Origin: Vitrella brassicaformis CCMP3155
Lineage: Eukaryota; Protista; Chromerida
Reading direction: 5' to 3'
Length of the DNA: 30,797 nucleotides
Assembly: GCA_001179505.1 (NCBI GenBank)
Contig: CDMY01000685.1
Span: 1-30,797 of the forward strand
A program made the translations under genes and the position numbers. The notes below the pieces were generated by a model. The model was given only the letters and a program-made list of their open reading frames with translations, was not told where the DNA came from and made no database searches. How positions within the stretch are numbered: position 1 is the first letter of the stretch; every line of letters begins with the position of its first letter. Shown in pieces: positions 1 through 28,900 of this stretch.

Positions 1-1850
1 GTACACATCATCGCCCACACTCAGATGCGTCACACCCGCTCCAACACTCACGACCGTCCCCGAGCAATCGCCGCCAGGCGGACCCGGGTCACCAGGATAC
101 AGACCCATCACGTTCAACACGTCACGGAAATTCAAACCAACCGCACGCACACGCACCTCCACGCACCCCTCGGGGAGCTGCACGTTGTCCGGCTGCTTCT
201 GGGGCCTCAGCCGTAGGTTGGATATGGCCCCACGCTCAGCCATGTGGAGCTCAACCGGTCCCCTTACGGGCAGGGTGGACTTGACGAGACGGGGAATCAT
301 CAGGTGCGTGCTTTTGACGGACACTTCAGGCTCGTATGGGGCCTCTGCCTGCCTCTCCATCACCAGATTGACGGTATCGCACCACTCGGCTGTCGACTGC
401 CGAGCAACCTCGATGCAGCCGATCGTCACTCGGTGGCTCATGTCCATCTCCATTTCAAGCCGAGCGCTCTTGGCGAAGCCCCACAGGCCCGAGTGCCGCG
501 GCGGCGTTCCATCATGGCCGTCGACTGACAGCACAGGCGCCCACACGAAGGGCAGCGAGCCGCCCTTGCGGGCAGATACGGCCTTGCACAGCTGCAGGAA
601 GCCGTCAAGCACGTCGATGGGATCGCTCGCTTCTTCCAGAGCGGCCACGTACAGGACGGTGCTGGATTCGCTCCTGTCCAGACTCTCGCCAACGGCCTCA
701 GCGCTCGGCAGCCCGCTGAGGACGGATGTCTTGCGCTGAAGCGATGCGCTCACTTCCTCGGCAAACGACTGATCGCGGCTGATGACGAGGACGGATGCAT
801 CGGCGTCGGCTGCTGGATGGTCCTCGGCAGACGGCTCTGCGCGCTCCCGCCACTCCAGCTGCCACAGGAGCTCGCGAGGGATCTCGACGCGCGCAGACAA
901 GTCGATCTTGCGAAGAGATAGCTCCTCGATGGCCACAGCCTTCTTCAGAGCCACCGTCGGTGGCTGATTCGCCTTGACGTCGGACTTGGGAGGGCAGTAT
1001 TGGTAGACAGTCACGTCTGCCTTCGCGTCTCCTTCGTTCTTATCGAGCAGAGTGACAACGGCCCAGCACTCGTGTTTCGTCATCTTTGTCACGGCCGCAC
1101 GTTTGGCCCCGACCGGCACGACTGGATGTCGTTCCTGTCGGCCCGCAGTCTTGGGACCATGCTCAGAGAAACGTGATAGGTCAGGATGAAGCAAGAGGGC
1201 GGTGGCCTGGAATGCTCCGTCAAGCAGAGCGGGATGTGAGACGAAGCCCTCCTCGAAATCATCTTCCAAGTCTGACGACAACCTTGCCAACGCTTTGTCA
1301 TCGCTAAGGTAGAGCTCTTTGATGGTCTGGAACCGCGGCCCATACTCAAGACCCACAGCTCGGAGCTCCTCGTAGAAGCGACCCACAGGGATCGGACGCA
1401 TCACACAGCTCTTGATGTCCTCGAGTGTCGTCTGGTCGGACTGGAGAGTGCTCGTCGTGACGGAAGACGCCTTGCCGAAAGCATGAGTCATTACATTAGT
1501 CTTGTCCGTTGCGGGACAGCTTCGAATCTCGATATCGCCGTTGACGTCCCGCGCCGCAATGACATCGACCTCTATATCCTCACTTAGGACGAGGGGCTGC
1601 TCGAAGGCGATGTTCTCTATCGTCACAGAGGTGGCTTTGGAACCCATGCCGGCAGGATGCTGGGCCTTGCCTTGGATTGCCACGGCAGCAAGCAGGTCGA
1701 TGAAACCAGCACCAGGCATCAAGACATTCTTCGCCACAACGTGGTCGAGGAACAGTGCCTTGACGTTATCTCGAATGGATGCACTGACAACCCATGTGCC
1801 ACCGGCCGACGGTCGCTTCCTGCCAAGCACCGGGTGCGCCGCCTCGATCC
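1..1850 (-). CDS. Module 4 DH - pseudo-KR - N-terminal part of ER (no AT); truncated by window edge
   Basis: Hand translation: HPVLG, DHVVAKNVLMPGAG, GLEYGPRFQ, HPALLDG, GLWGFAR, RGPVELHMAERG, GLNFRDVLNVMGLYPGDPGPPGGDCSG...VGDDVY, with the last codon ending exactly at position 1. Confidence 0.88.
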
Positions 1851-4800
1851 AAGGGAAGGGGCGATGGCTCCACGACGGCAGCCGTGTGCCGAGCTCCTCC
1901 AGGGCATCTGATGCTGACGGGGCCACATCTAGTAGCACATGGGCGTTGGCGCCTCCGAAGCCGAAGGAGCTCACACCACCGACGCGCGACCTTCCGCCGG
2001 ATCGTGCCCCAAAATCGACGGGTTGTGTGGGGAAGACGACATTGAATGTGTCCGTGTCGATGTGGGGGTTCAGTTGCTGGAAATGCAGGACGGGAGGCGC
2101 GACACCATGCGCCAACGTCAGGAGGAGCTTGATGAGCCCCGCAATGCCCGCTGATCCCTCCAGGTGACCGATGTTGGTCTTGAGTGCGCCCAGCACCAGC
2201 GGATGAGCCATCCGGATCGTATCCGCGCTGAACACATCTCGAAGGGCGCCGACTTCGATAGGGTCGCCGAGGGATGTGCCCGTGCCGTGGGTTTCAACGT
2301 AGGACACGTCGGAAGGTGAGAGGTGGGCCTGAGAAAGACATGCTCGAAGGACCGCTTGCTGCGATGGACCATTTGGCGCCGTCAGGCTGGCACTCCTGCC
2401 GTCGTGGTTGACAGCCGAACCAAGAATGATTGCCAAGAGGCTTGAGCCTTTCGCACGCACAGCGCTGAGACGGCGCAGCACCACCGCTCCCGCGCCTTCG
2501 CCCCTCACGTAGCCGTTAGCCTTGGCGTCGAACGTCTTGGACTGGCACTCAGGTGACAGCATCCGTGCCTTGGAGAAGGCAATGAAGAGGTGCGGGGACA
2601 ACATCAGGTTGACGCCTCCCACGAGCGCGCCAGTCGTTCCTGCACAGAGATGTGAACATGCCGTCAGGAAAAGCCTCACTCTCGCTATTCACTGGACTTA
2701 CCTAAGCCATTCGTTACTCCGTTCTCGATGCTCTTGACGGCCGAGTCCATGGCGACCAATGAAGAGGAGCAGGCTGTGTCGATCGTCATGCTGGGTCCCT
2801 TGAGACCGAAGATGTAGCTGATACGATTGGACAAGATGCTGCTGGCAGATCCAGTGCCAACGTAGCTGCTGTTCTTGTTCACGAAGCTGAGGAAGTTCCA
2901 GTCATTGTTGCAGTTACCGATGTAAACACCCATGTCGGCGCCCAGTAGAGCCTCCCGTGAGTAGCCCGCTGAAGCCAGGGCCTCGTAGCCGACCTCAAGC
3001 ATCATGCGCTGCTGCGGGTCCAATGTCTGCACCTCGAGGTTGCTGATGTTGAAGAAGCTGTTGTCGAACAGCTCAGCTCCCTGTACGAAAGCTGCCCTCC
3101 TGACGTAACACTTGCCGATTGCATCGGGGTCCGCGTCGTAGAACTCGTCCATGTCCCACCGGCTGAGGGGGACCTCCGAGACACAGTCCGTGCCGCTCAA
3201 GAGCATCGACCACAGAGCTGACAACGATGTAGCTCCTCTAGGAAGCCGACAGGCAGCGCCGACCACGGCGGCTCGCTCCCTGTGCCCACTCAACGTCGTC
3301 TTCGACATACGCTTTTCAGCCTTGGTTGCACGAGCCCTTCTTGACGAGCGGTCAGAAGTGTGGATCTTCTCAACGATCAGGTTAATGATGGCGCCGAGTG
3401 TGGGGTAGTCGAAGAGGGTGGTGGCGGGGAGCCTGACGCCCAGTTTGTTGGACAAGGCGTTGCGGAACTCGACGGCTCCGAGCGAGTCGATGCCCAGGTC
3501 CTGGAGCGGCGCGTCGAGGGAAGGGAGATCGCTCTCGGCCACGTGGCCCAGCACTTCGGTAGCGGTCTCCAACACGGTTGCCTTGACAAAGGCGCGCAGG
3601 TCGTCTGCAGCCATGCTCCTGAGCTTGCTGCGCAGCTCACTGTCCACGAGGATGCTGCTGTCGCCGCTGGCAGACGAGGGCGAGATGTGGTCGAAGAAGG
3701 TCGGCACCAGCTCATAGCGTCGAAGGAAGACATTCCAGTCGCCGAAGGGCTGGCATCCCACCACGCTGCTGCTGCTGGTGGCGCTGATGCCATCAATGGG
3801 ATTGTTGTTGACGAGGCAGAGGTCATGTAGCACCCGAAGGCCCAGGTCGTTGCTGATGCCGCGCAGTCCCACTTTGCTGAGGTGCTGTCGAAGGTTGGCG
3901 GCCATTCCCTGCTCCACCCACGGGCCCCACTGGATCGACTGGCCACTCAGCCCGCTCGCACGGCGATGCACCGCAAGGGCGTCGAGGCAAGCGTTGGCCG
4001 CCGCGTAGTTGGTCTGGCCAAAGTTGCCGTACAGTGATGCAGCCGACGAGAACAAGACGAAGTGGTCGACGTGGTGGTTGTGGCCTGAGGTGGTCGTGGC
4101 GTCATGGAGGTTCCACGCGCCTCCCACTTTCGGTCGGTAGACTTGCTCGATGCCCGTCACAGTCTGCTGCTCCAGTGAGGCGTCGGCCAGGACACCGGCC
4201 GCGTGGAACACGGCCTTGACAGGAGGCAGCCCCTCAGTTGTGGTGATGCGGGCCAGGAGCCCCTCGCAGGAGCTGAGGCTGCTTACGTCACACGCCATGA
4301 GGCTGATGATCCCTGGCTGCTTCGGCCCACTGCTGTTGCTGGCACTGGCGTCATTGGACGCGACCAAGGGCGCAAGCTCCCGCCAGAGGGCGCTGTCCTC
4401 CACTTGAGGAGAGGGGCGCCCCTTTCGCGACACCAAGACGACGTGCTTGGCGCCCTCAACCACGAGCCATCGCGCCACGACCAGCCCGAGGCCGCCAAGG
4501 CCTCCAGTCACCACATAGGTGCCGCCTCCTCCTGTGGCCGTCGCAGATTGATCCGTTTGGTGGCGGCCAGAGAGGTGCAAGTTGTTGTCGGCGATGCTGG
4601 GGAGGCGGATGACGACCTTGCCCATGTGGTGGGCGCGCTGCATGAAGCGGAATGCCGCGAGTGCGTCATGCTTGCCGCCGGCACTCGTCATGTCGAAGGG
4701 GTGGATGGGTGGAGGGGTCACATGGCCCGTTTCCACGAGCCTCGTGATCCTCTTGAGCATCGTCTGGAACCAGCCGGGGTCGCTCTCCACCATGTGGTCG

Positions 4801-7800
4801 ACAGCGATGGCCTCGTAAGTCACGTCGGGACGACACCGACGCATCTGGGCGGGACTGTAGATGCCCCGCTTGCCCAGCTCCATGAACCGGCCACCCTCGC
4901 CAAGCAGCCGAAGGGACGCCTCGAGCATCGCACCGGGCAGTGAGTTGAGGACAACGTCCACCTTATTGTCGTCGGCCGCCCCTTGTCCGTTGTCTTTGTC
5001 TCTGTTGCTGCTGTTGCTGTGCAGGGTGAGGAACGTGTTCATGTCGGTCTCGAAGGCTGCAGGGTCCCTCGAGGTGGTGATGTACTTGACGCCCAGCGAC
5101 CGCACGAATGNNNNNNNNNNNNNNNNNNNNNNNNNNNNNNNNNNNNNNNNNNNNNNNNNNNNNNNNNNNNNNNNNNNNNNNNNNNNNNNNNNNNNNNNNN
5201 NNNNNNNNNNNNNNNNNNNNNNNNNNNNNNNNNNNNNNNNNNNNNNNNNNNNNNNNNNNNNNNNNNNNNNNNNNNNNNNNNNNNNNNNNNNNNNNNNNNN
5301 NNNNNNNNNNNNNNNNNNNNNNNNNNNNNNNNNNNNNNNNNNNNNNNNNNNNNNNNNNNNNNNNNNNNNNNNNNNNNNNNNNNNNNNNNNNNNNNNNNNN
5401 NNNNNNNNNNCACTTTGCTGAGGTGCTGTCGAAGGTTGGCGGCCATTCCCTGCTCCACCCACGGGCCCCACTGGATCGACTGGCCACTCAGCCCGCTCGC
5501 ACGGCGATGCACCGCAAGGGCGTCGAGGCAAGCGTTGGCCGCCGCGTAGTTGGTCTGGCCAAAGTTGCCGTACAGTGATGCGGCCGACGAGAACAAGACG
5601 AAGTGGTCGACGTGGTGGTTGTGGCCCGAGGTGGTCGTGGCGTCATGGAGGTTCCACGCGCCTCCCACTTTCGGTCGGTAGACTTGCTCGATGCCCGTCA
5701 CAGTCTGCTGCTCCAGTGAGGCGTCGGCCAGGACACCGGCCGCGTGGAACACGGCCTTGACAGGAGGCAGCCCCTCAGTTGTGGTGATGCGGGCCAGGAG
5801 CCCCTCGCAGGAGCTGAGGCTGCTTACGTCACACGCCATGAGGCTGATGATCCCTGGCTGCTTCGGCCCACTGCTGTTGCTGGCACTGGCGTCATTGGAC
5901 GCGACCAAGGGCGCAAGCTCCCGCCAGACGGCGCTGTCCTCCACTTGAGGGGACGGGCGCCCCCTTCGCGACACCAAGACGACGTGCTTGGCGCCCTCAA
6001 CGACGAGCCATCGCGCCACGACCAGCCCGAGGCCGCCAAGGCCTCCAGTCACCACATAGGTGCCGCCTCCTCCTGTGGCCGTCGCAGATTGATCCGTTTG
6101 GTGGCGGCCAGAGAGGTGCAAGTTGTTGTCGGCGATGCTGGGGAGGCGGATGACGACCTTGCCCATGTGGTGGGCGCGCTGCATGAAGCGGAATGCCGCG
6201 AGTGCGTCATGCTTGCCGCCGGCACTCGTCATGTCGAAGGGGTGGATGGGTGGAGGGGTCACATGGCCCGTTTCCACGAGCCTCGTGATCCTCTTGAGCA
6301 TCGTCTGGAACCAGCCGGGGTCGCTCTCCACCATGTGGTCGACAGCGATGGCCTCGTAAGTCACGTCGGGACGACACCGACGCATCTGGGCGGGACTGTA
6401 GATGCCCCGCTTGCCCAGCTCCATGAACCGGCCACCCTCGCCAAGCAGCCGAAGGGACGCCTCGAACATCGCACCGGGCAGTGAGTTGAGGACAACGTCC
6501 ACCTTATTGTCGTCGGCCGCCCCTTGTCCGTTGTCTTTGTCTCTGTTGCTGCTGTTGCTGTGCAGGGTGAGGAACGTGTTCATGTCGGTCTCGAAGGCTG
6601 CAGGGTCCCTCGAGGTGGTGATGTACTTGACGCCCAGCGACCGCACGAATGCCTTCTTAGCGTCGCTTCCCACCGTCCCAAACACCGTCGCGCCCAGCGT
6701 GTGGCACAGCTGGATGGCGGCCATTCCGACGCCTCCCGAGGCGGCATGGACCAACACTCGGTCGCCGGCCTTGACCCTTGCCAGGTCGACGAGAGCGACT
6801 TGGACGGTGGCCATGATGACGGGCAAGGCCGCCGCCTGCTCGTGCAGCAACGAGGGCTGAGTCACCGGCAGCCGATGCACCAGCCGAGCGTCTGTCGCCA
6901 CGTAGCTCTGCAGACAGCCGGGAGCCAAGCCGAAGACGTCATCGCCGACCCTCACGTTGTCGACACCAGCAGTCGCCACGCTCACGACAGTGCCGCAGCA
7001 GTCGCCACCAGGAGCACCTGGTCCATTGAGTGATTGATTGATTGAGTGATTGATTGACAGACAAACAAACAAACGAACAGACAGACAGACAGACAGACAG
7101 AGGTACATCCATGTACTAAGCACTAAGCAGGCACAGTGCACTGTGAACTGTCTGCTTGTCTGTCTGTCTGTCTGTCTCATTGGCTTCTCGCTTTGACTGA
7201 CTGACTGACTGCTTTGACTGATTCACTCATTGATTCACTAATTGATTCACTCATTGACTGATTGGTTTACCTGGGTCTCCCGGGTAGAGTCCCATGACGT
7301 TGAGCACATCCCTGAAGTTGAGACCCACCGCCCGGACTCGCAGCAGGCAGGTGCCCGCGGGCAGCTCTCCTCCTTTGTCGGCATCTTGGCCGACACTGGC
7401 CCGGCTCAGGGGCGGATATGGACACGGCCGCAGCTTGAGGTTGGAGATGGCGCCTCGCTCAGACAGGTGCAGCTCCACAGCCCCGCGTGGCGCTATGGCG
7501 CTCTTGGCCAGTCGGGCAGCGTACAAGTGCTCCCCTCTCACAGCCACCTCCACCTCTCGGTTGGCGCCGCGACACACAGACAGGAGACGCTCCAGCTGTG
7601 ATGAGACCACCTCGACTCGACTGGCGCTGGGGGAGAGTGGCTCGATGTCGACACAGCCGACAGCCACTGGACGGCCGAAGGTCTGCTCCAACTCCAGCCG
7701 AGCGCACCGGGCGAGGCCCCACAGACCACCGCCCTCAGCCAGCCACCTGGGAAGAACCGCCGACGGTGTCCGAGACGACAGAGAACAATGTGATGGTGAC

Positions 7801-10800
7801 ACTGAGACGCTCTGCACGCCGCAGGACACCAACCACACGAAAGGCACCTTTGCCGGCGCCTGCCTGGGGGCCTCAGACTGAGGCTCCTCTTGTTGCTCGT
7901 TTGAGGCCGAGCGTGTGGGTCGCAAAGCCAAGAGAGCCTTGCAGATCTGAAGAGCAGCGTGCGTGTGCTCCACCGCCGCCTGGACCGCCCCGCCCTCTTG
8001 CTGTCTGTCCTCTTTTGCCGTGCTGTCATCAAACAGCGACCCAAGGTAGATGATCGTGTCCCAAGAGCCCTCGACCAGGCGCTGCTCGAGCCGCTTGGGA
8101 GCGGCCATGACGCTGGCAGCCGTCCAGTGATCCACTTGCATCGTCATGCCAGAGCCAGCGGTGTTCTTGTCTGCCCATTGTGTGGCCAGTGCCTCCCCCA
8201 CACCTCCCTCGCTGCCGATCACCAGCACCGAGGAGGGAGGCTCGGCAGAAGGGGAATCGCTGCTGGCTTCCGTGTCCGCCTCGGTGGTGGTCTCGTCGTC
8301 TTGTTGGCTGACTTGCTCCTCGTCGGACGGTCGTCGGATCGATGGTGCCTCCGGAGTGAGGTGCGTCCACTGGACCTCCCAGAGGACGTCCCGAGGGACC
8401 TGCACGGCCGGAGCAGCCAGGTCGATCTGCCGCGCGGTGACGCTGTCCAGGCTGGCCACCAGTTTGTGATGCTGGTCGAAGAGCTGCACGTCGAAACTGG
8501 CCTGCCCGGCAGTCGCCGACACCAGCTTGACGTGACTCCAGAAGACAGGAGCGGAGGGTCCACCCACAGCCACCTTGAGGCGGCCCAGGACAGCCCTGTC
8601 GATCGAGAAGGGCACCATCGCTTTGGCCTTGCTCTTGGCCGCCTCGCCGGCCATGGCGAAGAGAGCTGCTGCCGACTGGAGGGCCCCATCGAGGATGGCC
8701 GGGTGGATGCGGAAACCCTCCTCAAAGTCGTCCAGGCCGCTGCCATTCGTGCCTCCAGGCACCAGCTCAGCCAGCACCTCTGTGGCAGGCATCTGACCGC
8801 CCTCCTCGCCCTCGCTCTCGCCCCTCTCGGCGGTCGGAGGCCTCAAGACGTGAACGCGGCGGACCGTCTGGAACCGGGGACCGTACTCGAGACCGACCTC
8901 ACGAAGCTTCGCGTACAGCTCAGCCCCCTCGACCGTCTGGACAGCGGCGGAATCGTCAAAGGTGGCCTTCCTCTCAAGCAGCTCTGCCAGGGTTGCGCCT
9001 TGACAGTCGGAGGGAATCGATTGGTCCACACTCGTCACACCTGGCGCTTCTGACTGCTCTGGCACCTCACTCACACGCAGGACAGTCTTCGCGTGTACTT
9101 GTGACAGCCTGTCACCGCCATCCGCCCCTTGATGTTTTCCCATGTAAGACGATATCTCCAGCTCTATGCCGTCCTGTTGAGAGCCGGCCCTTCCACTCAC
9201 TTCCAGCGTTGGCAGCTCGCTCAGCGCTGCAAGAATCAAGGGCTGCTGGAACTCCACTCCTTCCAGGTACATGACATTCGACGATGGGAGGGCAGCGCTT
9301 GCCGACGCTGTGAAGATCTCGACGAAGCCAGTTGCAGGCATGACGGAGCGCTTGGATACGGCATGATCTTGAATCAGTTGGCAGACTTCGCGCCGTAGAC
9401 GTCCCACCGCCCGCCATGCATTCTTGTCCACGGGGTGCACGCGTTGCGTGAAGGGGTTGGCTGGAGGCTTCCACGGGAAGGGAGAGTGGGCCCACGTTGG
9501 CAGTGGGACAGCAGGCAGCTGGCCGCCGGCTCCCGTCTTCACTTCCATGATGACGTGAGCATTTGCGCCTCCAAAGCCAAATGAGCTGACACCGCCTATC
9601 AACATGCTGGCTTGCTCTGACGGTGTCAGTGCCGTCGCTTCGGTAGGGTAGATGACGTGGAAGTGTTCATCCACATCGATGTGGGGGTTCAGGGCCGTCA
9701 AGTGCAGGTTGGGCGGCGACACCCCGTGGTGAAGCGTCAGCAGGAGCTTGATGAACCCCGAGATGCCAGATGAACCTTCCAGATGACCGACGTTGGTCTT
9801 GAGTGCGCCCATGACCAGTGGTCTGTCGCTGGCCCTTCCCCTGCCCAGCACGGCTCTGATGGCGCCCACCTCGATGGGATCGCCCAGACTCGTACCTGTC
9901 CCGTGAGTCTCAATGTACGACACTGCGGAGGGACTGGCGCCGGCTTGCGCCAGCGCTCGAGACAAGACCTCTTGTTGAGCGGGTCCATTGGGAGCAGTAA
10001 GGCTTGCGCTTCTCCCATCGTGGTTGACGGCACTCCCGAGCACCGTTCCGAAAGACACGAGGGACTCACTTGCCGCAAAGGCCGACGGGTGACAGACCAG
10101 CACGGCGCCACACCCCTCACCGCGTGCAAATCCGTCAGCCCTCTCGTCAAAGGTCTTGCATCGTGAGTCCCGCGACAGCATGCGAGCCCTCGAGAAGGCA
10201 ATGAATGGCTGGGGAGACAGCATCAGGTTGACACCCCCCACCAGCGCGGCAGGGCATGTCTGGGTGCTGATGCTCCTGAGGGCCACATCCATAGCCACGA
10301 GCGACGAGGAGCAGGCCGTGTCAATAGTGAGACTGGGGCCCTTGAGGCCAAAGATGTACGAGAGGCGATTCGAGACGATGCTGGCGGCAGCGCCAGTGCC
10401 GGCGTAGGCACTGCGGCCACGGTCGAGTGACTGGACCAGAGCGCCCCAGTCGTTGTTGCAGCAGCCCATGAAGATGCCGATTTGTTGGCCCACCAGCGCC
10501 GCCTTGCTCAGGCCAGCGCTGTGCATGGCCTCATAGCCGACCTCGAGCATCAGCCGCTGCTGGGGGTCCATGGTGAGGATCTCGGCGGGGCCGATCTTGA
10601 AGAATGTGTTGTCGAACATGTGGGCGGCGTCCATGAAGGCTCCCTCACGAGAGTAGCAGCAGCCAGTCGCGTCGGGGTCGCTGTCCAGGACGGCCTCCAT
10701 GTTCCAGCGGGACACGGGCACTTCAGCGATGCAATCTCTCTGGGACATCAGCATGTCCCAGAAGCCTGTTGGGCTGTTGACCCCCCCAGGAAGACGGCAG

Positions 10801-19800: not shown

Positions 19801-22800
19801 AGTTGCCCACAAACACACCCATGTCGGCGCCCCGCACGTCTTTCAGACTGAGCCCGGCACAGTCGAGGGCGCTGGTAGAGACCTCCAGGAGTATGCGCTG
19901 CTGGGGGTCCATCGTCACGGCCTCGCTGGGAGGGATGCCGAAGAACGAGTTGTCGAAGAGGTCGATGTCGTCCAGAAAGCCTCCCTGTTTGACGTAGTAG
20001 GACCGGCCAAACTTCTCGACATTGGGGTCGTAGAGGCCCTCAACGTCCCAGCGCATCTGAGGCATCTCGGTGATGCAGTCCGTCTGCGTCATCATCATGT
20101 CCCAGAAAGCCAGGGGGCCGTCCACGCCGCCAGGCAGACGACACGACATTCCAACCACAGCAAGGCCTCGAGACTTTCCCGAGACTGCTGCTGAAGTGGG
20201 CGTTGTCGAGGACTCTCTCGCCTTGGGCTGTTTATCGTCCTCGAGGGTAGTGGCCACGTATGTGACGATGCCTTCGAGAGTGGGGTGGTCGAAGAGTGCC
20301 GTGGCGGGGAGGCTGACGCCCAGCCTGCTGCTCAAACTGTTGCGGAACTCGACGGCGCCCAAGGAGTCGATGCCGAGGTCCGCCAAGGGCATGTCCATTG
20401 GCGGCTTCTCGTCAATGCCCAACACGTCACGGGCAGTATCCATGGTGATCCGTTCCAGCATCTGGCGGCGCTTGGTACCACTCAGGCTGCGCAGCCAGTT
20501 CTGTGCGTCAAGGCCTTGTTGGGCTGCTTTGGCATCAAGCTGCAGCGGCTTGACGCGAGAGAAGAGGTTGTTGTAGTGCTGGCCCGAAAAGGCCCTGAGA
20601 AGGAGACTCGTGTCGAGTGGCTGGGCTGTCGTGACACCGCCGGCAGGGTGGGCGAGGAGGGAGTCGAGCAGACGGAGGGCCAGCTCGTTGGAGATGGGCG
20701 GGATGCCCGCGGCCTTCATCTTGTCCATGCTGCCCGCCGCTGTCGCCATGCCTTGGTCCGACCACGGACCCCACTGGATGCTCATTGAAGGACGCTGAAG
20801 GAACGGACCAACACGACACACACACCAGACAGACAGAGACAGACAGAGGGGACACGTTCAGTACAGATGGGTGACGAACACGCACATGAGTGGTCTGCTC
20901 ACCTCTGACGATTGTCGATAGCTGACGAGTGCGTCCAGACAGGCGTTAGCGGCACTGTAATTGCTCTGGCCCACGTTGCCCAACAGGCTCGTGATGGACG
21001 AGAAAGCCACGAAGCGCTGGAAAGGCGACTTCAGCTGTTGTTCCGCTCGGTGGATGTTCCACGCTCCCACAGCCTTGCCGACGTATGTGGTGCGGATGGT
21101 GTCGGGTGTCTGCTGGGCGAGTGGGGCGTCGCTGAGTGCGCCTGCGGCGTGGAAGACGTGTGAGATGCGAAGGCCCTCCTGCTCGAGACCGCTCATGACC
21201 TCCAGCACACTCGTCTCAGCTCCGACGTCGCAGCTGATGGCCCTCACAGCTGCCCTGGAGTGCTGAAGCCGCGCCCATCGATCGGCCATCGACGCATCTG
21301 GCGCGCCTCGCCGTGAGAGAAGAGCGATATGGCGGGCGCCTTGCTCCACCAGCCAGTCGGCGAGCACCAGGCCCAGCCCGCCTGTGCCGCCCGTGACGAC
21401 ATGCACCCCAGATGCATCTGTGGCCGTGTCGACGGAGCTGGTGACGTTGACGATGACCTTGCCGATGTGCTGAGCTTGCTGCATGAAGCGGAAGGCCGCT
21501 GTGAGGCCGGTGCTCTTGTCACTGCTGTAGATGTCGAAGTTGCAGAGAGGGATTGGCTGGATGGACTGCCCCTCTGCCAGGGTGCTGATGTCGTCGAGAA
21601 GCTGACCGAACCACTGCGGGCGGGCCTCGATCATGTGGTCAAGGGCCACTGTCGTGTAGTGCACGTCTGGCCGCACACTCTTCATCTGCTCCTCCGTCCA
21701 GATGCCGCGCTTGCCCAGCTCCACGAACCGGCCGCCGTGGCCCAAGGACTCCAGTGAGGCCGGGATGTAGTCGTCAATCAGAGAGTTGAGCACCACAGTG
21801 GCGAGGCCCCCACTGGCAGTGAGGCTCTGCATCTCCTGCCTGAACTGTGAGGCGTCTCGTGAGGTTGCGATGAATACGATGCCCATCTGCCGAAGGAAGT
21901 CTTGCTTCTTGGCCGATCCCGCCGTGGCAATCACGTCCGCTCCCACTCGTCTGCAGTACTGGATAGCGGCGAGCCCCACTCCACCGGTGGCCGCATGGAC
22001 CAACACACGGTCACCCTTCACCACCTTGGCCGCGTAGCGCAACGAGAACTCCACGGTGGCAAACACGCTGGGCAGGGAGGCCGCAGCGCTGAATGACCAG
22101 CCGGACGGCATGCGGGCCAGCGTCCACTCGCTCGTCGTGGCGTAGGTCTTGAGGCACCCAGGGGAGATGCCGTAGACGCTGTCACCCACCTTGAACCGCC
22201 CGTCTGTCTGGTCGGCAGTGCCGATCCGGACGACTGTCCCCGCACAGTCGCCACCGGGCGGCCCAGGGTCGCCGGGATACAGCCCCATGACATTGAGGAC
22301 GTCCCGGAAGTTGAGGCCGATGGCGCGAATCCGAACCTCCACTTGCTGAGCCGACAGGTCGATGGCACGGGCCTCTTGAGGCATCGGGTGGAGGGACAGG
22401 TTGGAGATGGCCCCTCGCTCAGACATGACCACCTGGATGGGCCCCCTCTGCTGGATCCCCTGTGCTGGATGGACCCTCGGGACAAGGGTGCTGCCCTGCC
22501 GCACACACATCTCCATCTCGTTGGACTGCTGCACAAGCCAGTCCGGCAGGGCCTCCTTGGTCAGCTCATCGACGTCGACACATGCGATACGATCCGCCAT
22601 GCCCGTCTCCACCTCACACTCGAGGCGAGCGGACCGCGCAAGGCCCCACAGCCCACCATGCACTGGCAAGCCGTCGAATGCAGTCGCGGCGCCCATCTGC
22701 TTGCGGGTCAGCAGCACCGTCCGGGGCATCTGGCGCTGAGCACGATGGACACTTAGGGCGGTCTGCACGAGCCTGACAGCTCCACAGATAACTGCAATGG

Positions 22801-25800
22801 GGTCAGCGGCGTAGGCGTCGTTGACGGCTGCCGCGTAGACGATTTGAGATGCCGTATGCGCCGACACAAGTGACTCAGACACCTCGTCAGCGGCCGCAAA
22901 TCTGAGGCCCTCTCCCTCCCCCAGTGCTTCATTGAAGATGCGTTGCTGTTCATCTGATGCACCGATGACCAGGACGTTGCCGGCAGTGCCCTTGTTGGTC
23001 TCCTCGGCCAAAGGGACCCACTCGACCTCCCACAGGGAGGGCAGTGCTGCCGTGGTCTTGTTCGGCCGCCGTGAGAAGTCGACTTCCCGCAGCTTGAGGC
23101 CGCTCATGTGCAGAGCAAGATGGCCGTTTGCCGTCCTCAGAGTGACGTCGACCTCCGCTCCAGTCGCCTCTCGCGCCTTGAGCATCAGATGAGCCCACAG
23201 CTCTGTCACCCCAACGCAGGACCGCGGCCGTCTGCCGTACGTCATCCTCCTCACGCTCACTGGCACCATGGCCTTGGCGGATGGTGGCGCTTCGTCTGTG
23301 TCCTGCTGCTGCAGCAGCATGGCCGCCCCGTGCATGGCGCCATCCACCAGGGCGGGATGGTAGCCGAAGCCCTTCTCGAAGTCCTGAAGCTTGTCCACGC
23401 TGACGCGCACAAGGGCCTCCCCCTCCCCCATTTGGGCACTCCGCAGCGCCTGGAAGCGGGGGCCGTACTCGAGGCCGATCTTGTTGAGAGATGTGTAGAG
23501 ATGCGACACTGCAGATGGTACGGGGAGCCGTTCTTGCAGTGCCGTCAGCCAGTCTTCCTTATCGATGGCTGGGCTGCCCGCCGTCGGTGATTTCCCCTCC
23601 CAGAGGATCGCACGCGCCCTCACGTGCGGCTGCGGCTGGATGTCGCCCTGGTCCCCGCCACCCTGACTCCACAGAGTCGTCACTCCTTCCTTGTCAATGG
23701 TGCACCCAAACATAGGCCTCTCCCCATCTGCTGCTGGGTCGATTGTCATGGGCACCTCGAAGCTCACGTCCTCGCACACGACCTCCTGGCCCTCCACCGG
23801 CACATTCTTCTTCTGCCACTGGAACATCGCACTGCCCAAAGCGTCGAGGTAGGCAGCCGCTGGGACGACGGCCATCCCCTGCACCACGTGGTCACCGAAG
23901 AGGGACAGGGCGCTGCGGGAGAGGGTCCGCGTCGACTCCAGTTCGATCCCCTCCGATGTGTCCTTGCCGCCGACCAGGGGATGCGGCACCTCCACCCAGG
24001 GAAATGACCGCCGGGTGAATGTCACCGGAGAGGCGGGCCCAGCGTCGCAGCTGTCCGGCCGCTCCAGGATGACATGCGCATTGGTGCCGCCGAAGCCGAA
24101 AGATGAGACGCCTCCGTATACGGCCCCGTTGCTGTCTGCCAGCTTGGCAGGCTCCGAGGGGAAGACCATGGGGACGTCGTTGACTGCGATGTGGGGGTTG
24201 AGGGCCGAGAAGTGGAGATTGGGCGGGGCGGTCTTGTTACGCAACACTAGAATGACCTTGAGCAGGCCAGCGATGCCCGCCGCTCCCTCCAAGTGGCCGA
24301 TGTTGGTCTTCAGTGCGCCCATGACCAGTGGTCTGTCGCTGGCCCTTCCCCTGCCCAGCACGGCTCTGATGGCGCCCACCTCGATGGGATCGCCCAGACT
24401 CGTACCTGTCCCGTGAGTCTCAATGTAGCCGAGCGCATCATACGATATGCCTGAATGAACGAAGCAAACAACACAACAGCACCCAGCCAGCAGAAGGGAA
24501 ACATACATACAGGTGTGAGCAGCACCATGACTCATTCCTTTGTCTCGCTTGTGAATGACGGACGGACCTGCATCCTCGATGGCCTCGGCGAGAACCTGCT
24601 CCTGCGCAGGGCCGCTGGGAGCAGTCAGGCTGGCAGCTCGGCCACCATGGTTGACTGCTGAGCCACGAATGCGCGCCAACGCGTGTTTCTCCGTCACTCC
24701 CTCACTATCACTGTCGGCTGCCGCCTTGAGTACGATGGTAGCGCAGCCTTCACCTCTGACGTATCCATCAGCCGAGGCGTCGAATGTCTTGCACCGTGCG
24801 TTCCTCGCCATCATGCCGGCACGGCAGAAGGCGGCCGTCACCTTGGGCGACATCATCAGATTGACTCCAGAGGCAACTGCAGCTGAGCAGATGCCCTTCT
24901 GCAGGTACTTGACGGCCACGTCGACAGCCACAAGGGACGACGAGCATGCCGTGTCCAGTGTGAGGCTGGGCCCCTGGATGCCCAGCCAGTAGGACGACCG
25001 GTTGGCGATGATCGATGGCGCACTGGACGTGGCCGAGTAGCTGCTGACGGGCAGAGCTGTGGAGTCCACGACGTACGACCACTCGTTGCAGCAGCTGCCC
25101 ACAAAGACACCGATGCGCTGCCGCACCAGAGCTGCACGCTCGAAGCCCGCCTGGTGCAGAGCGGTGAAGGTGACCTCCAGCAGGAGGCGCTGCTGGGGGT
25201 CCATGGTCCTCGCCTCGCTCTCGGCGATCTTGAAGAAGGAAGAGTCGAACAGCTCGGCGTCCCGAATGAATCCGCCCTCCTTGATGTGCATCTTGGTCTC
25301 GCCCCTGCCCTCGGGATTGGGGTCGTACCACTCGTCCGCATCCCATCGCGTCGGCGGCACCTCCACTATCGCATCATGACCTCCTACCACCATGCGCCAC
25401 AAGTCGTCAAGGCTCTCCACGTCGCCCGGCAACCGACACGCGGCGCCCACCACGAGCACCGATGACGCATCAGCCGCGTCGGTCACCCTGGACAGTGCCC
25501 TCGATGAGAGGAAGGCAGTCGATTCAGTCAGCATTTCCACCAGATAGTCACATATGGCGCTGAGGGTGGGGTAATTGAAGATCAAAGATGGTTCCAAGCT
25601 GGGGGGAGGGAGGGTGGGACAGACACAATCAACACACAAAGACAGACACGCATCGATGAATGGATGGATGGGTGCACTCTGAGGCTACTGTGTCACTCAC
25701 TCACTGTTGTCTCACTCAGGTACCTGATGTTCAGACGGCTTGCCACCAGATCAGTGAATTCCACGGCGCCGATCGAGTCCACGCCCAGCTCCAGCAAGGA

Positions 25801-28800
25801 CGCATCGATCTCAGGCACTCGACCGTCGCCAAGGATCGCCTCTGCGCTCTCTATCAGCACTCGCAGTACCTCCTCGCGATCGGCTGGCGAGGGCTGCGGT
25901 GGGGAGTCCGGGGCAGGCGGGGAGTCGACAGCCGCCCGAGAAGAAGGGGTGGTGGGGACTCTCTCAGACGCGTCCTCAGGAGCGGGGGGCTCGGCAACCC
26001 ACTCCTTGCGAAATGTTGGCGTCTCGGGTGGTGCGGCTGCCGATTTCAACCGCGCCACCTCACTCATGGTGACGGACAGCAGGACGCCAGCCTGCTCGCC
26101 GCTCTCGATCAAATCCTTGGTCTTCTGGCGCTGGATCTTGCCGCTGGTTGTCTTCGCGATGCTCCTTGGCTTCAGCAAAGACACTCGGTGCACTGGCATG
26201 CCCAGCTTGGCGGCGACGTTGCCTCCGATGTGCTGCGCGAGTGTTTTGAGGACCTCCTCCTCACTCGCCTTGCGATCTTGCCCGAGGCCCAGACGCCTGC
26301 CGAGCCATCCCAGTGAAGTGCGATGCGCGGGGGTGTCGGCCCTCGCCGGGTCCGCCATGTAGGCATCCACTCGCTCAGCGAGCTTCTCAGGTCGGACCTC
26401 CACAGCTATGCCAACCATCTCGCTGCCGTCCACCTCCACGGCGAATGCGGCCGTGCAGCCGGGTCGGGCCGCATCGCTGTGGGACTCTATCTCCTCCTCG
26501 ATATCCTGCAGGCACAAGACAGGACAAGACAAGACGCAACCCAGCCAGTAGGCGACATGAGGTTGTTCGTTCGTTGGTCATGTGTGTACCTGTGGGAAGT
26601 AGTTGCGTCCTCTGATGACGATCATGTCCTTGAGTCTGCCGGCGATGAAGAGCTCCTCGTGGAAGAAGAATCCCCTGTCGCCGGTCTTCATGAAGGAGAG
26701 GCCCTCGGTCTCCTCGTCCAGCTCCAAAGATCCATCGCCCTCACGCCTGGGCGCTAGCCTCGCGTGGAAGGTCTCTTGACTGAGCTCGTGATGCTGGAAG
26801 TACCCCTGCGCTGTGCTCCCAGACTTGACCCACACCTCGCCGACGCGGCGCTCCGGCAATGGGCGCAAAGTCTCGGGATCGACTATCACGACTGATAGAC
26901 ACAAGGCACGCAGGCAGCAAGGAAGCGACAAGCACGATACGATGAGGGCGAGGATGGTCGTGTCTGTCGGTGTGCTCTTCCCGTTTTGTACCTGCGACCC
27001 CTGGGTATGGGACGCCGCAGCCCACAAGTCGCCTGCGCCCATCCGATTCGCCCTTGTCGTTATCCCGCACCCCCCGCCAATGGTCAAATACCTCAATGAT
27101 GCCCTAATCACACGTATGGAAACACGACAAACGAGTGGACGAGTCCCGCGCGTGGCTGGTCCAACCATGTGTGCATGTTTGTGCAGTGCAGTGCCCACCT
27201 GTTTGGTCATCTTGTCGATGTTGACCTCCACGACCAAAGGGAGGGTCGTAGAGGTCTTGCGCCCCGTCACAAAGAGGGTGTTCTCAGCCAACCCAAACGC
27301 CGGCAGGAAACCGCTGGCACGAAGACCTCGAGGCTCGAATTTCTGACATATACACGACAGACAGACCACAGACAGACAGACAGACAGACACAGACGGCAG
27401 TGTGCTGTTTGCCGTGTCGGCGCCTCTTGCCCCCCTCTCTCTCTGTCTCTCTCTCTCCCTTACTTTGATGAATTTTTCGACGGTAGAGTATCTGATGGGC
27501 TCAGCCCCACAGAGGAAGCCCACGGTCTTGCTGAGGTCGAGCCTCCGCCAGACGTCATCGGGTATCTTCCGCGTCACGAGCTCAAACCCGAAGTTGGGCG
27601 ACGCACATGCAGTTGCCTCGTACTTGGACATACACTCGAGCCACAGGTGGGGCTTGCGGATGAAGTCCAGGGGCGACATCATGTAGATCGTCTGCCCGAA
27701 GAACAGAGGCGCGCAAAGAAACCCTATCAAACCTGCAACATACACAACACACAAGCAACACACACGGAGGCTTATGTGTACGTCCTGGCCGACCGATGGC
27801 TGCTCTGCTGCCCCTGTCTGTCTTGTTGGTTGCTCAGTTGATCTGATCACTCACTCACCCATGTCGTGATATGCGGGGAGCCATGAGAAACATCTCAGCT
27901 CATGGCCCAGCGCCCTCCATGAGATGGCCTCGCGAGCTCTGCACACACAACACACCACACCACACCATGAGGGGAGAGGGGGAAGAGAAAGTGTGTGCAC
28001 GTCGATGCGTCTGTCTGTGTGTATGTGTCGAGGGTTTGTGTACCTGAAGAACTCGGAGTACTGGTGGTATGGGTAGTCGGCAATACTGATGCTGCAGGAG
28101 GGGTCTTCGACCCGTGCATCGAAGCCGAAGACCGACACGCACAAGTGGACGTTGTGGACGAGGTTGCCATGTGACACCATGACGCCCTTGGGGTGACTCG
28201 TCGACCCACTCGTGAACTGCAGGAAGGCGAGATCATCGCACCGCAGTGGCGGCGGGCTGAAGGATGCCGCCCGCCCCGTCTCACTGGACCGCCTCGTTAT
28301 CGTGTCAGTCGTCGTCCATCTAATGGATCTCCAAAAAGGATCTGAAGCCGCTGCTGAAGTCCACCCCAGCGCCTGCACGACCCGGTGATAGGTCGTGTTG
28401 GTCAAGGTGGCCTTGGCCTCCGTCGTGGCGGCAATCTTGCTGAGCCGCGGCACATCGATGGTGACCTTGCTGGGGTCTGGTGGGTACACGGGGACGGCCA
28501 CCACACCCGCATAGAGGCAGCCGAAGAAGGCCACAGCGAAGTCGTGGCCAGGCGGGTAGCACAGGACCGCCCTGTCACCCACTGTCAGCCCGAGGGTCTC
28601 TGAGAGGTGGTGGGCGATGGTCTTGGCGCGGCCATGCAGCTCGCCAAAGGTGACAGTGGTGGCGACCTTGCCGTCGCTGCCGAGGCAGTTGAGTGCGGGT
28701 TTTGGGGGGTGGTCGTGGGCCATCTCGTCGAGCATGGAATAGATGGCATGTTGGCCTCGTCTCCGGTTGCAGTAGAACTGATACAGATCAGCAGCCCCCG

Positions 28801-28900
28801 ACGCGGCCGCCACTCCGAGTGAATCATCCTCGCTGGAGGAGGACGTTCGTCGGGACCTCTCGTGCTTGTCAAGCGTCGAATCGCCGTCCTCTGGCGCCAT
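1..28900 (-). CDS. Giant modular type I PKS/FAS (FAAL-primed, at least 4 extension modules, single embedded AT, one C-methyltransferase); 13 exons in window, 3' end outside window
   Basis: Exons (minus): 28900-28044, 27938-27859, 27732-27464, 27342-27199, 27103-26992, 26891-26590, 26505-25724, 25598-24568, 24450-20903, 20794-16936, 16834-7271, 7017-2702 (spans N gap and duplication), 2639-<1. All 12 junctions are GT..AG, cumulative phases match, and splicing restores conserved motifs (HDMG|LIG, NYFPQ|DIE, PGDPG|APGGDC). Four KS (DTACSSS/HGTGT/GHLEG) and four ACP (G[IV]DS[IL]G) motifs are present. Confidence 0.93.
1910..3280 (-). CDS. Module 4 ketosynthase (KS4)
   Basis: VVGAACRLP, IDTACSSSL, intron 2701-2640, then ALVGGVNLMLSP, ETHGTGT, NIGHLEGSAG, SSFGFGGANAH. 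The part after the intron was translated by hand because it runs off the window and is missing from the ORF track. Confidence 0.92.
2640..2701 (-). other. Intron 12 (62 nt, phase 1), within KS4
   Basis: G|GTAAGT...GTGCAG|GA; joins VTNGLG to TTGALVGGVNLM. Confidence 0.88.
3370..9460 (-). CDS. Module 3 DH - pseudo-KR - ER - KR - ACP4 (no AT); ER C-terminus/KR appear twice around the N gap
   Basis: DH: HAVSKRSVMP and HPAILDG. ER: GLNFRD...PGDPG|APGGDC across intron 7270-7018, [44 protein letters not shown] at about 3470-3500. Confidence 0.88.
3870..6651. repeat. Near-identical 1,241-bp direct duplication (3870-5110 vs 5411-6651) flanking the gap
   Basis: Constant offset of 1541. Both copies end exactly at the gap edges. 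About 8 substitutions found by eye. Confidence 0.95.
5111..5410. other. Assembly gap (300 N)
   Basis: Run of n in the sequence. Confidence 1.
7018..7270 (-). other. Intron 11 (253 nt, phase 1), within ER3; microsatellite-rich
   Basis: G|GTAAAC...GACCAG|GT; (TGAC)n, (TGTC)n, (GACA)n and (TGAT)n patches on the + strand. Confidence 0.92.
9540..10830 (-). CDS. Module 3 ketosynthase (KS3)
   Basis: VVGVACRLPGG, IDTACSSSL, ETHGTGT, NVGHLEGSSG, SSFGFGGANAH. Confidence 0.95.
10940..11180 (-). CDS. ACP3
   Basis: [37 protein letters not shown]. Confidence 0.93.
11930..12900 (-). CDS. SAM-dependent methyltransferase domain, PKS C-methyltransferase type
   Basis: ICEVGAGTGATT (motif I, 12436-12456), YFFTDLG, FNVE, IAVNVLHAT (12218-12235), LKPDGLLIISE, FGLLEGWW (12087-12110). 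Confidence 0.88.
14290..17790 (-). CDS. Module 2 DH - pseudo-KR - ER - KR with His in place of catalytic Tyr
   Basis: DH: HVVAKQLIWP and SPRVLDG (intron 16935-16835 near its end). ER: GLNFRD and [21 protein letters not shown], YGPK, but GQSNHGAAN (CAT codon at 14553-14555). Confidence 0.9.
16835..16935 (-). other. Intron 10 (101 nt, phase 1)
   Basis: G|GTACGA...TGACAG|GT; links the 1314-aa and 3198-aa ORFs. Confidence 0.88.
17900..18820 (-). CDS. Acyltransferase (only AT in window), predicted malonyl-CoA specific
   Basis: VFLFTGQGSQ, QPALF, GHSLGE (catalytic Ser), AAVNGP, HAFH (18221-18232; established malonyl-type fingerprint), FIEIGP. Confidence 0.92.
18900..20170 (-). CDS. Module 2 ketosynthase (KS2)
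   Basis: VVGMSCRLPGG, VDTACSSSL, ECHGTGT, NIGHLEGAAG, SSFGFGGTN. Confidence 0.95.
20250..23980 (-). CDS. Module 1 DH - structural pseudo-KR - ER - KR - ACP2 (no AT)
   Basis: DH: HVVQGMAVVP and HPALVDG. ER: GLNFRDVLNVMGLYPG and [44 protein letters not shown] (Ser codon 20363-20365). No GHSxG/GQG AT motif between KS1 and DH1. Confidence 0.92.
20795..20902 (-). other. Intron 9 (108 nt, phase 0), within KR1
   Basis: GAG|GTGAGC...CTTCAG|CGT; joins YRQSSE to RPSMSIQWG. Confidence 0.88.
24040..25480 (-). CDS. Module 1 ketosynthase (KS1)
   Basis: VVGAACRLPG, MDPQQRLLLE, LDTACSSSL (Cys), ETHGTGT and NIGHLEGAAG (both His), SSFGFGGTNAH. Contains intron 24567-24451. Confidence 0.95.
24451..24567 (-). 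other. Intron 8 (117 nt, phase 1), within KS1
   Basis: G|GTCCGT...TTCAG|GC. The stop-free 39-codon read-through (PSVIHKRD...CCCVVCFVHS) is not KS-like. Confidence 0.85.
25530..25890 (-). CDS. ACP1 (loading acyl carrier protein)
   Basis: EEVLRVLIESAEAILG...LLELGVDSIGAVEFTDLVASRLNI|SLEPSLIFNYPTL, interrupted by intron 25723-25599. Confidence 0.9.
25599..25723 (-). other. Intron 7 (125 nt, phase 2), within ACP1
   Basis: AG|GTACCT...CCCCCCAG|C. Confidence 0.88.
26100..28900 (-). CDS. Loading domain: fatty acyl-AMP ligase (FAAL-type adenylation domain), exons 1-7
   Basis: Motifs LAFLQFTSGSTSHPKGVMVSHGNL, SWLPAYHDMGLIG (FAAL signature, split by intron 2), FGLAENTLFVT, KTGDRGF, GRLKDMIVIRGRNYFPQDIE and catalytic Lys in KTTSGKIQR. 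The N-terminus is Ser/acidic with no obvious signal peptide. Confidence 0.9.
26506..26589 (-). other. Intron 6 (84 nt, phase 0)
   Basis: CAG|GTACAC...(TCTTG)n...TGCAG|GAT; restores NYFPQDIE. Confidence 0.92.
26892..26991 (-). other. Intron 5 (100 nt, phase 1)
   Basis: G|GTACAA...ATCAG|TC; restores V-VIVDPET. Confidence 0.8.
27104..27198 (-). other. Intron 4 (95 nt, phase 0)
   Basis: CAG|GTGGGC...GATTAG|GGC; opens a 112-nt exon encoding LVGCGVP (FAAL-like). Confidence 0.75.
27343..27463 (-). other. Intron 3 (121 nt, phase 0)
   Basis: AAA|GTAAGG...(GA)n,(TGTC)n...GTCAG|AAA. Confidence 0.9.
27733..27858 (-). other. Intron 2 (126 nt, phase 1)
   Basis: G|GTGAGT...TTGCAG|GT; removal restores HDMGLIG. 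Confidence 0.92.
27939..28043 (-). other. Intron 1 (105 nt, phase 2)
   Basis: AG|GTACAC...GTGTGTGCAG|A; GT-repeat-rich; length 3n and stop-free. Confidence 0.8.

Follow-up and report, generated by a model that had tools for sequence, protein, structure and literature searches.

One in-line acyltransferase among the visible modules of a FAAL-headed type I FAS/PKS megasynthase from a Vitrella brassicaformis-type chromerid

Modules lacking an AT have been described as a hallmark of type I PKSs in algae and stated for all FAS-I-like giants of chromerids, and the FAS-I/PKS-I giants of Vitrella and Chromera have been catalogued (Tomcala et al. 2020, PMC7464705). Mixed cis/trans-AT multimodule PKSs were described in dinoflagellates (Van Dolah et al. 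2017, PMC5725682), e.g., K. brevis contig 28414 and the 7-module PKS of G. polynesiensis with six AT-less modules and one cis-AT, and for haptophytes and Breviolum minutum a single AT was proposed to serve the whole megasynthase, an arrangement termed 'semi-trans-AT' (O'Neill 2020, PMC7073580). Considering these three precedents, the novelty that the initial annotation of the present locus attached to an AT-poor synthase is not supported: the observation itself is correct, but descriptions of such synthases exist for these algae and for the parasites related to them.

The window analysed here, i.e., the whole stretch of 30,797 nucleotides, contains the 5' ~29 kb of a nuclear, intron-containing minus-strand gene of a Vitrella brassicaformis-type chromerid. 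The predicted product belongs to the chromerid/coccidian 'FAS-I-like' family and is a highly reducing megasynthase of the type I FAS/PKS kind.

Domain architecture and acyltransferase content

Domains were called with Pfam on ten stop-free minus-strand pieces, and database searches were performed exon by exon. The resulting order is FAAL-ACP; KS-DH-ER-KR-ACP; KS-AT-DH-ER-KR-(C-methyltransferase insert)-ACP; KS-DH-ER-KR; a gap of N; ER'-KR-ACP; and KS-DH-ER up to position 1 (Table 1). The gene is multi-exonic, with the exon pieces of the FAAL region parted by short CT-rich introns and KS4 interrupted by a 62-nt GT-AG intron (2640-2701), and the N-terminal strand of ER3 is encoded at the end of the 16871-7254 piece. 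As in the alveolate FAS/PKS type, the protein begins with an acyl-AMP ligase and ACP loading unit, for which sequence matches point to the FAAL type: the best NCBIfam families are the fatty-acid--AMP ligases FadD32, FadD21, FadD28 and PRK05850, and the best solved structures are 7r7e-g, 3kxw and FadD23/28/32, supporting the FAAL-type loading domain recognised earlier.

At least three or four extension modules carry the full KS-DH-ER-KR-ACP set. In line with a multimodule alveolate type I FAS/PKS with reductive DH, ER and KR domains, Cys-His-His (DTACSS / HGTGT / KTN[IV]GH) is present in all four KS domains and the ACP serine (GxDS) in four ACPs, the DH His is retained, and KR1 and KR3 are intact, module 1 showing KS C-H-H, DH HxxxGxxxxP and KR YSAAN. 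KR2 has His in place of the catalytic Tyr. Open frames span 1608, 1326 and 3206 codons, and another covers 896 codons. Among the closest matches is CEL92229.1, a protein of Vitrella CCMP3155, and a word search (proteins up to 5610 aa) for the annotated Vitrella protein or a transcript-derived peptide spanning the gap returned no match above 84% identity. The insert of about 1100 aa in module 2 gave one weak ADH_N match (E 0.0027); BLAST of it against the gene's own domains, to see whether it might be a vestigial ER/KR set, found nothing past the post-KR linker.

Table 1 Features of the megasynthase gene in the window, listed from the start codon to position 1.
Feature	Position	Strand	Evidence or composition
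ATG start (28900) and FAAL-type adenylation domain, at least four exon pieces	26095..28900	-	Pfam AMP-binding, four pieces (28729-26095)
ACP0, loading carrier, GVDSI	25690..25857	-	PP-binding and motif
Module 1	20903..25465	-	KS1 25465-24209; AT-less linker 24208-23984; DH1 23983-23081
Module 1, reductive part	ER1 22351-21449; KR1 21409-20903	-	
ACP1, GIDSL	20255..20437	-	Pfam and motif
Module 2	10950..20164	-	KS2 20164-19043; AT2 18811-17912; DH2 17734-16952
Module 2, reductive part	ER2 16001-15111; KR2 15038-14460	-	
Module 2 insert, ~1100 aa, with C-methyltransferase	12488-12003	-	EVGAGTG
ACP2	11156-10950	-	
Module 3 to KR	5411..10823	-	KS3 10823-9699; AT-less linker 9698-9447; DH3 9446-8421
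Module 3, reductive part	ER3 7033-6149; KR3 6064-5456	-	
Copy X' of 1241-bp ER(C half)-KR repeat, module-3 side	5411..6651	-	
Assembly gap, 300 N	5111..5410	.	
Copy X of repeat (partial ER and KR), ACP3/module-4 side	3870..5110	-	
ACP3, GIDSL	3375..3578	-	Pfam and motif
Module 4, incomplete, leaves the window	1..3278	-	KS4 3278-2702 and 2639-2080; linker 2079-1837
Module 4, remainder	DH4 1836-1003; start of ER4 168-1	-	

Acyl_transf_1 was found by Pfam in the piece 20857-16880 only (aa 683-982, E 1e-59), inside module 2 and about 3300 codons from the start. This domain (AT2) matches TIGR00128 fabD at 192.7 bits and, with GQGSQ, AQPAL, GHSLG, the Arg and HAFH, has every catalytic and malonyl-specificity motif, so that both Pfam and motifs support the malonyl-type AT previously noted in module 2 on the basis of GHSLG and HAFH. 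The reported lack of an AT in modules 1, 3 and 4 was likewise substantiated, as a second Pfam pass at E<=10 over every unassigned stretch and the three KS-DH linkers, the profile search suggested earlier for cryptic AT domains in these modules, identified none; in the linkers it matched only the first ~50 positions of KAsynt_C_assoc, and at this threshold the AT-less modules also showed no recognisable AT-docking or linker domain. The spacing from KS to DH is 75-84 residues in modules 1, 3 and 4 (75 in module 1), and alignment of the AT-less junctions with module 2 and with an AT-bearing paralogous module (L001) places 388 AT residues opposite 12 in module 3. Judged from this alignment, the AT is cleanly excised in all three modules, so that KS is followed by about 15 residues, the post-AT linker motif (W..R.FPW..HP) and DH. 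Because the AT-less junctions lie within the unbroken frames of 1608, 3206 and 896 codons, they are not artefacts of splicing or assembly.

The assembly gap and its flanking repeat

A direct 1241-bp duplicate abuts both edges of the gap, i.e., the ER-KR on either side is one sequence present twice, which the initial annotation had missed. The two copies are 99.36% identical, with eight differences (three changing an amino acid, five synonymous) and no indel. With the gap at its entered length of 300 N, the flanking sequences lie in different frames (offset 1541), and merging the copies makes the frame continuous. Word depth of the repeat in the runs X1, X2 and X3 was 26-31, 33-37 and 9.8-10.3, compared to 14-17, 18-24 and 4.7-7.4 for the unique flanking contigs, corresponding to ~1.7-1.9x the flanks in all three runs; moreover, each of the eight alternative letters is seen in the runs, and no variants are present in the long unique contigs between 181 and 3426. 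The ~1.8x depth and the presence of both variant sets indicate two real genomic copies and weaken an unmerged-overlap artefact as the sole cause of the gap, although the second copy may reside in another gene. These runs were DNA Logan contigs, 150-900 nt long and interrupted at conserved PKS motifs, and none of them bridges 3870 or 5110; in JGI metagenome contigs, an exact-pattern scan for a gap-spanning contig was empty and a protein scan yielded one 57%-identical fragment.

As the repeat flanks the gap, module 3 (KS-DH-ER-KR) is joined to ACP3 and module 4 by scaffolding only, and the gap may be empty or contain a junction or an entire module, so that the numbers of modules and ATs are to be read as minimums. 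The earlier count of at least four modules with one AT therefore stands for the visible sequence but not as proof for the whole gene, exactly one AT being the number in the 28.9 kb seen, with the gap and the 3' end outside that count. An AT-bearing, tandemly repeated paralogous KS-AT-DH-ER-KR-ACP module is present in L001 (GCA_029979685.1); this L001/L003 module stands in tandem at ~99% identity in sister assemblies, and the Vitrella runs contain an exact match to the first 30 bases of its intron. L001 was rejected as the segment hidden in the gap, since it is 89% and not 99% identical to the repeat and carries its own ER-KR.

Loading of the AT-less modules

Comparison with homologues was informative with regard to loading, the argument comprising three genes. 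Chromera Cvel_3424 is collinear with the window, and its KS1 pairs with the window KS1 in the KS tree (support 99/96), in which the two KS4 exon pieces were placed in one row with X between them. In Cvel_3424, AT1 reads GHGVG, with the nucleophile lost, and AT2 reads GHSLG; from the KS1-KS1 pairing it follows that the dead AT1 of Chromera and the deleted AT1 of the window are states of the same module. Cystoisospora suis PHJ15679.1 ('type I FAS') has the same module types as the window gene, with a dead AT (GVGLG), an AT with GHSLG and, next, an AT-less KS-DH; its junction and that of the window align column for column. Of these two homologues, only the Cystoisospora protein has a deleted AT in third position. 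Both proteins have exactly one intact AT, located in the second module beside a dead or deleted AT. This pattern of a dead or deleted AT followed by an intact one, common to Vitrella, Chromera and Cystoisospora, is the addition of the present analysis. Retention of one intact AT per lineage is expected if the whole polypeptide needs that AT, and the pattern thus indirectly favours AT2 serving the neighbouring ACPs. The earlier proposal that either AT2 or a stand-alone AT loads all ACPs is reasonable, since one or the other has to supply the AT-less modules, and its AT2 option gains indirect backing of a comparative kind from Cvel_3424 and PHJ15679.1.

A megasynthase with AT2 shared along the chain is our best overall explanation, and we regard the chances for and against it as balanced. 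Here the FAAL would activate a fatty acid as acyl-AMP and pass it to ACP0, each module would add one malonyl unit, a C-methyl branch might originate from module 2, and the His-for-Tyr exchange in KR2 might leave the beta-carbon unreduced. AT2 would malonylate its own ACP and the ACPs of the adjoining AT-less modules within the dimeric megasynthase ('semi-trans-AT'), and such sharing is the most likely loading mechanism, put at about an even chance. Such a synthase would yield a lengthened, mostly saturated and possibly branched lipid, likened to the lipids proposed for the apicomplexan oocyst wall or resistant stages, a prediction made uncertain by the possible inactivity of KR2. Against the shared-AT reading it was counted that the paralogous L001/L003 module in the same read sets has an AT, that no recognisable AT-docking or linker domain is kept in the AT-less modules through which an AT might reach them, that the gap may hide a further module, and that the gene runs past position 1, where more ATs may exist. 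More tentatively, and with slightly less than an even chance, AT2 could be a dedicated intramolecular shared AT from chromerids to coccidia, one live AT for at least three ACPs with the others dead or excised; the ER-KR repeat at the gap would then mark ongoing module duplication or gene conversion.

The ratio of one AT to four modules might also arise in part from the assembly, if further AT-bearing modules of an ordinary mixed line with several ATs lie in the gap and/or the unseen 3' part, a reading that we consider credible yet clearly short of an even chance. Two real ER-KR copies are consistent with this, the frame between them would need a whole ACP-KS-(AT)-DH-ER stretch, and the AT-bearing tandem module of the sister assemblies, together with its intron start in the Vitrella runs, points in the same direction. 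However, the merged copies form a canonical module 3 in a continuous frame, the second copy could belong to another gene, and L001, given its 89% identity, is not the missing piece itself. Rather unlikely, in our view, is a free-standing trans AT encoded elsewhere that loads ACP1, ACP3 and later ACPs and leaves AT2 to module 2, a true hybrid cis/trans-AT line like those of some dinoflagellate PKSs. AT-less PKSs of Karenia brevis are indeed accompanied by many stand-alone ATs, with 25 single-AT contigs (PMC5725682), and the chromerid survey lists 29 genes with AT domains (PMC7464705), but the only stand-alone Vitrella AT listed there is the plastid-targeted FabD, Vbra_21812, the 1.9 kb upstream of the gene contain nothing AT-like, and such an AT would leave unexplained why an intact AT persists in each homologue next to others that are dead or deleted.

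Very improbable is that the AT-less modules are decaying or non-extending and the gene is wholly or partly a pseudogene, which would make trans-loading needless. The lost catalytic Tyr of KR2 and the frame shift that a direct tandem duplication of 1241 bp would cause (1241 mod 3 = 2) would fit such decay, whereas the Cys-His-His of four KS domains, all ACP serines, the DH His and KR1/KR3 are intact, the frames of 1608, 1326 and 3206 codons are open, most of the changes that separate the repeat copies are synonymous (5/8), and a coccidian shares this conserved AT-less junction.

If AT2 loads neighbouring carriers, as the preferred shared-AT reading proposes, the gene would offer an experimentally tractable eukaryotic case of one AT shared along an assembly line, and this would bear on the understanding and inhibition of the related type I FAS enzymes of Toxoplasma-like parasites, which are candidates for making the lipids of the oocyst wall. 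Were the dedicated shared AT to prove true, the loading logic of the apicomplexan 'type I FAS' would be neither cis-AT nor trans-AT. For now, the gene adds a further case to a class that has been catalogued, and the practical value of this analysis lies in a warning: a real repeat borders the gap, so the numbers of modules and ATs taken from the assembly are lower bounds.

Comparison with known megasynthases

With bacterial trans-AT PKSs (bacillaene PksJ/PksL and others) the window gene has in common AT-less modules and a DH directly after the KS, but it differs by one in-line AT (17912-18811) and by showing no docking domain and no discrete AT in the 1.9 kb upstream of the gene. KS3 scores 422 bits with CurL and ~350 with DEBS versus ~290-303 with PksJ/PksL/'AT-less PKS' chains, a rough proxy that would place the window KS outside the trans-AT KS clade and the gene outside the bacterial type; the top KS3 match is 7zma (581.6 bits summed over two stretches), whose PKS type is not stated. 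In the KS tree, AT-less and AT-bearing KS domains interleave.

CpFAS1 and the mycobacterial FAAL-PKS systems (FadD32-Pks13, FadD28-Mas) resemble the gene in passing acyl-AMP to an ACP, followed by fully reduced malonyl extensions, and FAAL structures are the best PDB matches of its FAAL, with the KS of Mas and Pks13 among the matches of KS3. CpFAS1 of Cryptosporidium parvum has an AT in each module, unlike the window gene with one AT per three to four visible modules, and the mycobacterial FAALs are separate proteins, unlike its fused FAAL. The dinoflagellate mixed PKSs are likewise alveolate, combine AT-less and AT-bearing modules in one chain and have their KS in the protist clade, but they are transcript contigs, lack FAAL loaders and are mostly partially reducing. 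In the semi-trans-AT algal megasynthases, a single AT in a multimodule chain is also proposed to load all modules; there the AT is N-terminal, whereas in the window it lies within module 2 behind the FAAL-ACP loader, and sharing is a proposal in both.

Overall, the chromerid/coccidian FAS-I-like proteins share with the window gene the FAAL-ACP start, fully reducing KS-(AT)-DH-ER-KR-ACP modules, an intact module-2 AT, dead or missing neighbouring ATs, an identical AT-less junction motif and a KS1 orthologous to that of Cvel_3424. The window gene differs in that its AT1 is deleted, not dead, and in that its module 2 has the ~1100-aa C-methyltransferase insert and a His-for-Tyr KR.

Gene layout and AT content

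The gene, whose modules are numbered from its start toward position 1, has a GC content of about 62% and is split into stop-free pieces by short introns with CT-rich tracts, of which that in KS4 could be read exactly; the 1.9 kb upstream of the gene held no recognisable feature.

Table. Pieces, domains and sequence features of the gene
Feature	Positions	Strand	Content	Source
Translation start	28900		ATG	
Stop-free pieces	28963-27854, 27850-27287, 27459-26581, 26577-25696, 25684-20861, 20857-16880, 16871-7254, 7222-5411, [N gap 5111-5410], 5108-2688, 2688-1	minus		reading-frame scan
Start of gene		minus	AMP-binding spread over four pieces, then PP-binding (ACP0)	Pfam
Module 1		minus	KS-DH-ER-KR, then ACP	Pfam
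Module 2		minus	KS-AT-DH, ER-KR, long methyltransferase-bearing insert, ACP	Pfam
Module 3, up to gap		minus	KS-DH, then ER-KR	Pfam
Beyond gap		minus	partial ER-KR-ACP-KS, KS (C part)-DH-ER (N part), leaving the window at position 1	Pfam
AT2	17912-18811		Acyl_transf_1	Pfam
KR2	14460-15038			
KR2-ACP2 insert	11157-14459			
C-methyltransferase	12003-12488			
KS4 intron	2640-2701		62 nt, GT-AG	
Repeat, left of gap	3870-5110		1241 bases	
Repeat, right of gap	5411-6651		1241 bases	
KS3/KS1 tract	9775-9917, 24285-24427		143 bp	

When the ten stop-free pieces were searched with Pfam, Acyl_transf_1 matched a single time (E 1e-59), in module 2. Because AT2 has GQGSQ, AQPAL, GHSLG, the Arg and HAFH and scores 192.7 bits against fabD, established motif rules predict a competent malonyl-type AT, in agreement with the initial annotation. 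The same annotation had described modules 1, 3 and 4 as lacking an AT with their motifs otherwise intact, and this holds: Cys-His-His is present in all four KS and GxDS in four ACPs, every module retains the DH His, and YxxxN is found in KR1 and KR3; in modules 1, 3 and 4, KS and DH lie 75, 84 and 81 residues apart, respectively. Cryptic AT domains in these modules, which would have spoken against its reading, were not found by Pfam at E<=10, the sole match of the three linkers being the first ~50 positions of KAsynt_C_assoc, and no other unassigned stretch gave an AT signal at this threshold. The post-AT linker motif W..R.FPW..HP is retained immediately ahead of DH at the AT-less junctions, as aligned with module 2 and an AT-bearing paralogue, and the AT has been cut out cleanly there.

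KR2 reads GQSNHGAAN near 14540-14580 against the YxxxN of the other two KRs, so that the reported His in place of the catalytic Tyr in the methyltransferase-carrying module is indeed present. About 1100 residues separate KR2 from ACP2 and include the C-methyltransferase with an intact SAM motif (EVGAGTG); the flanks of this insert (656 and 282 residues) matched no Pfam family except ADH_N weakly (E 0.0027), and had no BLAST match to the gene's own domains.

The gap and its flanking repeat

The two ER-KR stretches abutting the gap differ by eight substitutions (five synonymous), with identity reaching both gap edges, so the ER-KR after the gap is the same sequence as that before it. Reads of this region were seen as Logan contigs, which are fragmentary here. 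All eight alternative letters are present across the runs, each in some run; unique long contigs covering between 181 and 3426 are variant-free in three runs, and word depth within the repeat is 1.7-1.9x that of flanking unique contigs. Given these observations and the synonymous changes, the genome holds two genuine copies of the repeat. In all runs, two further stretches (1-171 and 2395-2565) reach 8-25x the contig word depth of neighbouring unique sequence, and short-read assemblies break there because identical ER/KS-motif 31-mers are common to many modules of the genome.

Two unannotated NCBI sister assemblies (GCA_029979685.1, JARPNZ010001952.1; GCA_029979645.1, JARPOD010001294.1) hold a paralogous ER-KR-ACP-KS-AT-DH module, which shares 89% identity with the repeat and the sequence close to either side of it. 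The ends of this KS-AT-DH-ER-KR-ACP module overlap at 98.5-99% identity with a period of ~7.7 kb, which points to a tandem array of near-identical AT-bearing modules. An intron carrying (CT)n/(CCCT)n tracts interrupts its ACP, and the Vitrella runs contain the leading 30 bases of this intron without a change, at a loose end, so AT-bearing sister modules are present in the same or a very close organism.

With the nominal 300 N the two gap sides are not in the same frame, and merging both copies yields one canonical KS-DH-ER-KR-ACP module. By our own rough estimates, one copy might lie at this locus and the other elsewhere in the genome, and it is just as conceivable, if equally tentative, that the gap conceals one or more entire modules; a short tandem duplication at the gap seems improbable, and a wrong scaffold join is similarly doubtful. 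The numbers of modules and ATs are therefore lower bounds.

AT loading and comparison with related megasynthases

From established FAAL/PKS chemistry, the FAAL would put a fatty acid on ACP0, and every module would add one malonyl unit followed by full reduction; module 2 may yield a methyl-branched, less reduced position, because its SAM motif is intact and KR2 carries His for Tyr. We favour a model in which AT2 would serve neighbouring ACPs of the AT-less modules, since three lineages each keep one intact AT next to dead or deleted ones; loading by a free-standing AT is a serious rival.

The closest matches include the Vitrella CCMP3155 protein CEL92229.1. Collinearity between Chromera Cvel_3424 and the window gene extends from FAAL through module 2. 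In Cvel_3424, AT2 has GHSLG and AT1 is present, though with GHGVG, whereas the AT1 of the window gene is deleted. In Cystoisospora suis PHJ15679.1 ('type I fatty acid synthase'), an AT with GHSLG is followed by an AT-less KS-DH, the junction of which matches the window's at every alignment column. Its first-module AT has likewise lost the nucleophile (GVGLG) along with HAFH, which in Chromera is ACHS with the second His kept. Both first-module ATs are dead domains retained for structure, intermediate between an intact AT and the window's deletion. In the KS tree, KS1 groups with Cvel_3424 KS1 (support 99/96), and AT-less and AT-bearing KS are intermixed. By bit score, KS3 is closer to cis-AT KS (CurL, DEBS) than to single trans-AT KS chains. 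A tract shared by KS3 and KS1 has 95.8% DNA identity in otherwise diverged domains and looks like gene conversion between modules. Parts of the gene also occur at >=95% identity in marine sediment metagenomes and metatranscriptomes of three studies (runs X7, X12-X20), where Vitrella-like organisms therefore seem to be present.

Overall, the AT-poor observation is correct, and the gene is a well-documented case of an already described class. Tomcala et al. 2020 (PMC7464705) reported at least one AT-less module in all chromerid FAS-I-like giants, a trait that they regard as a hallmark of PKSs in algae, and noted methyltransferases in two of the Vitrella enzymes; mixed cis/trans-AT PKSs are known from alveolates (Van Dolah et al. 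2017, PMC5725682), in TgPKS2 the KS-AT linkers are short and an AT is inactive (D'Ambrosio et al. 2022), and 'semi-trans-AT' was coined for one AT serving a whole megasynthase (O'Neill 2020, PMC7073580).
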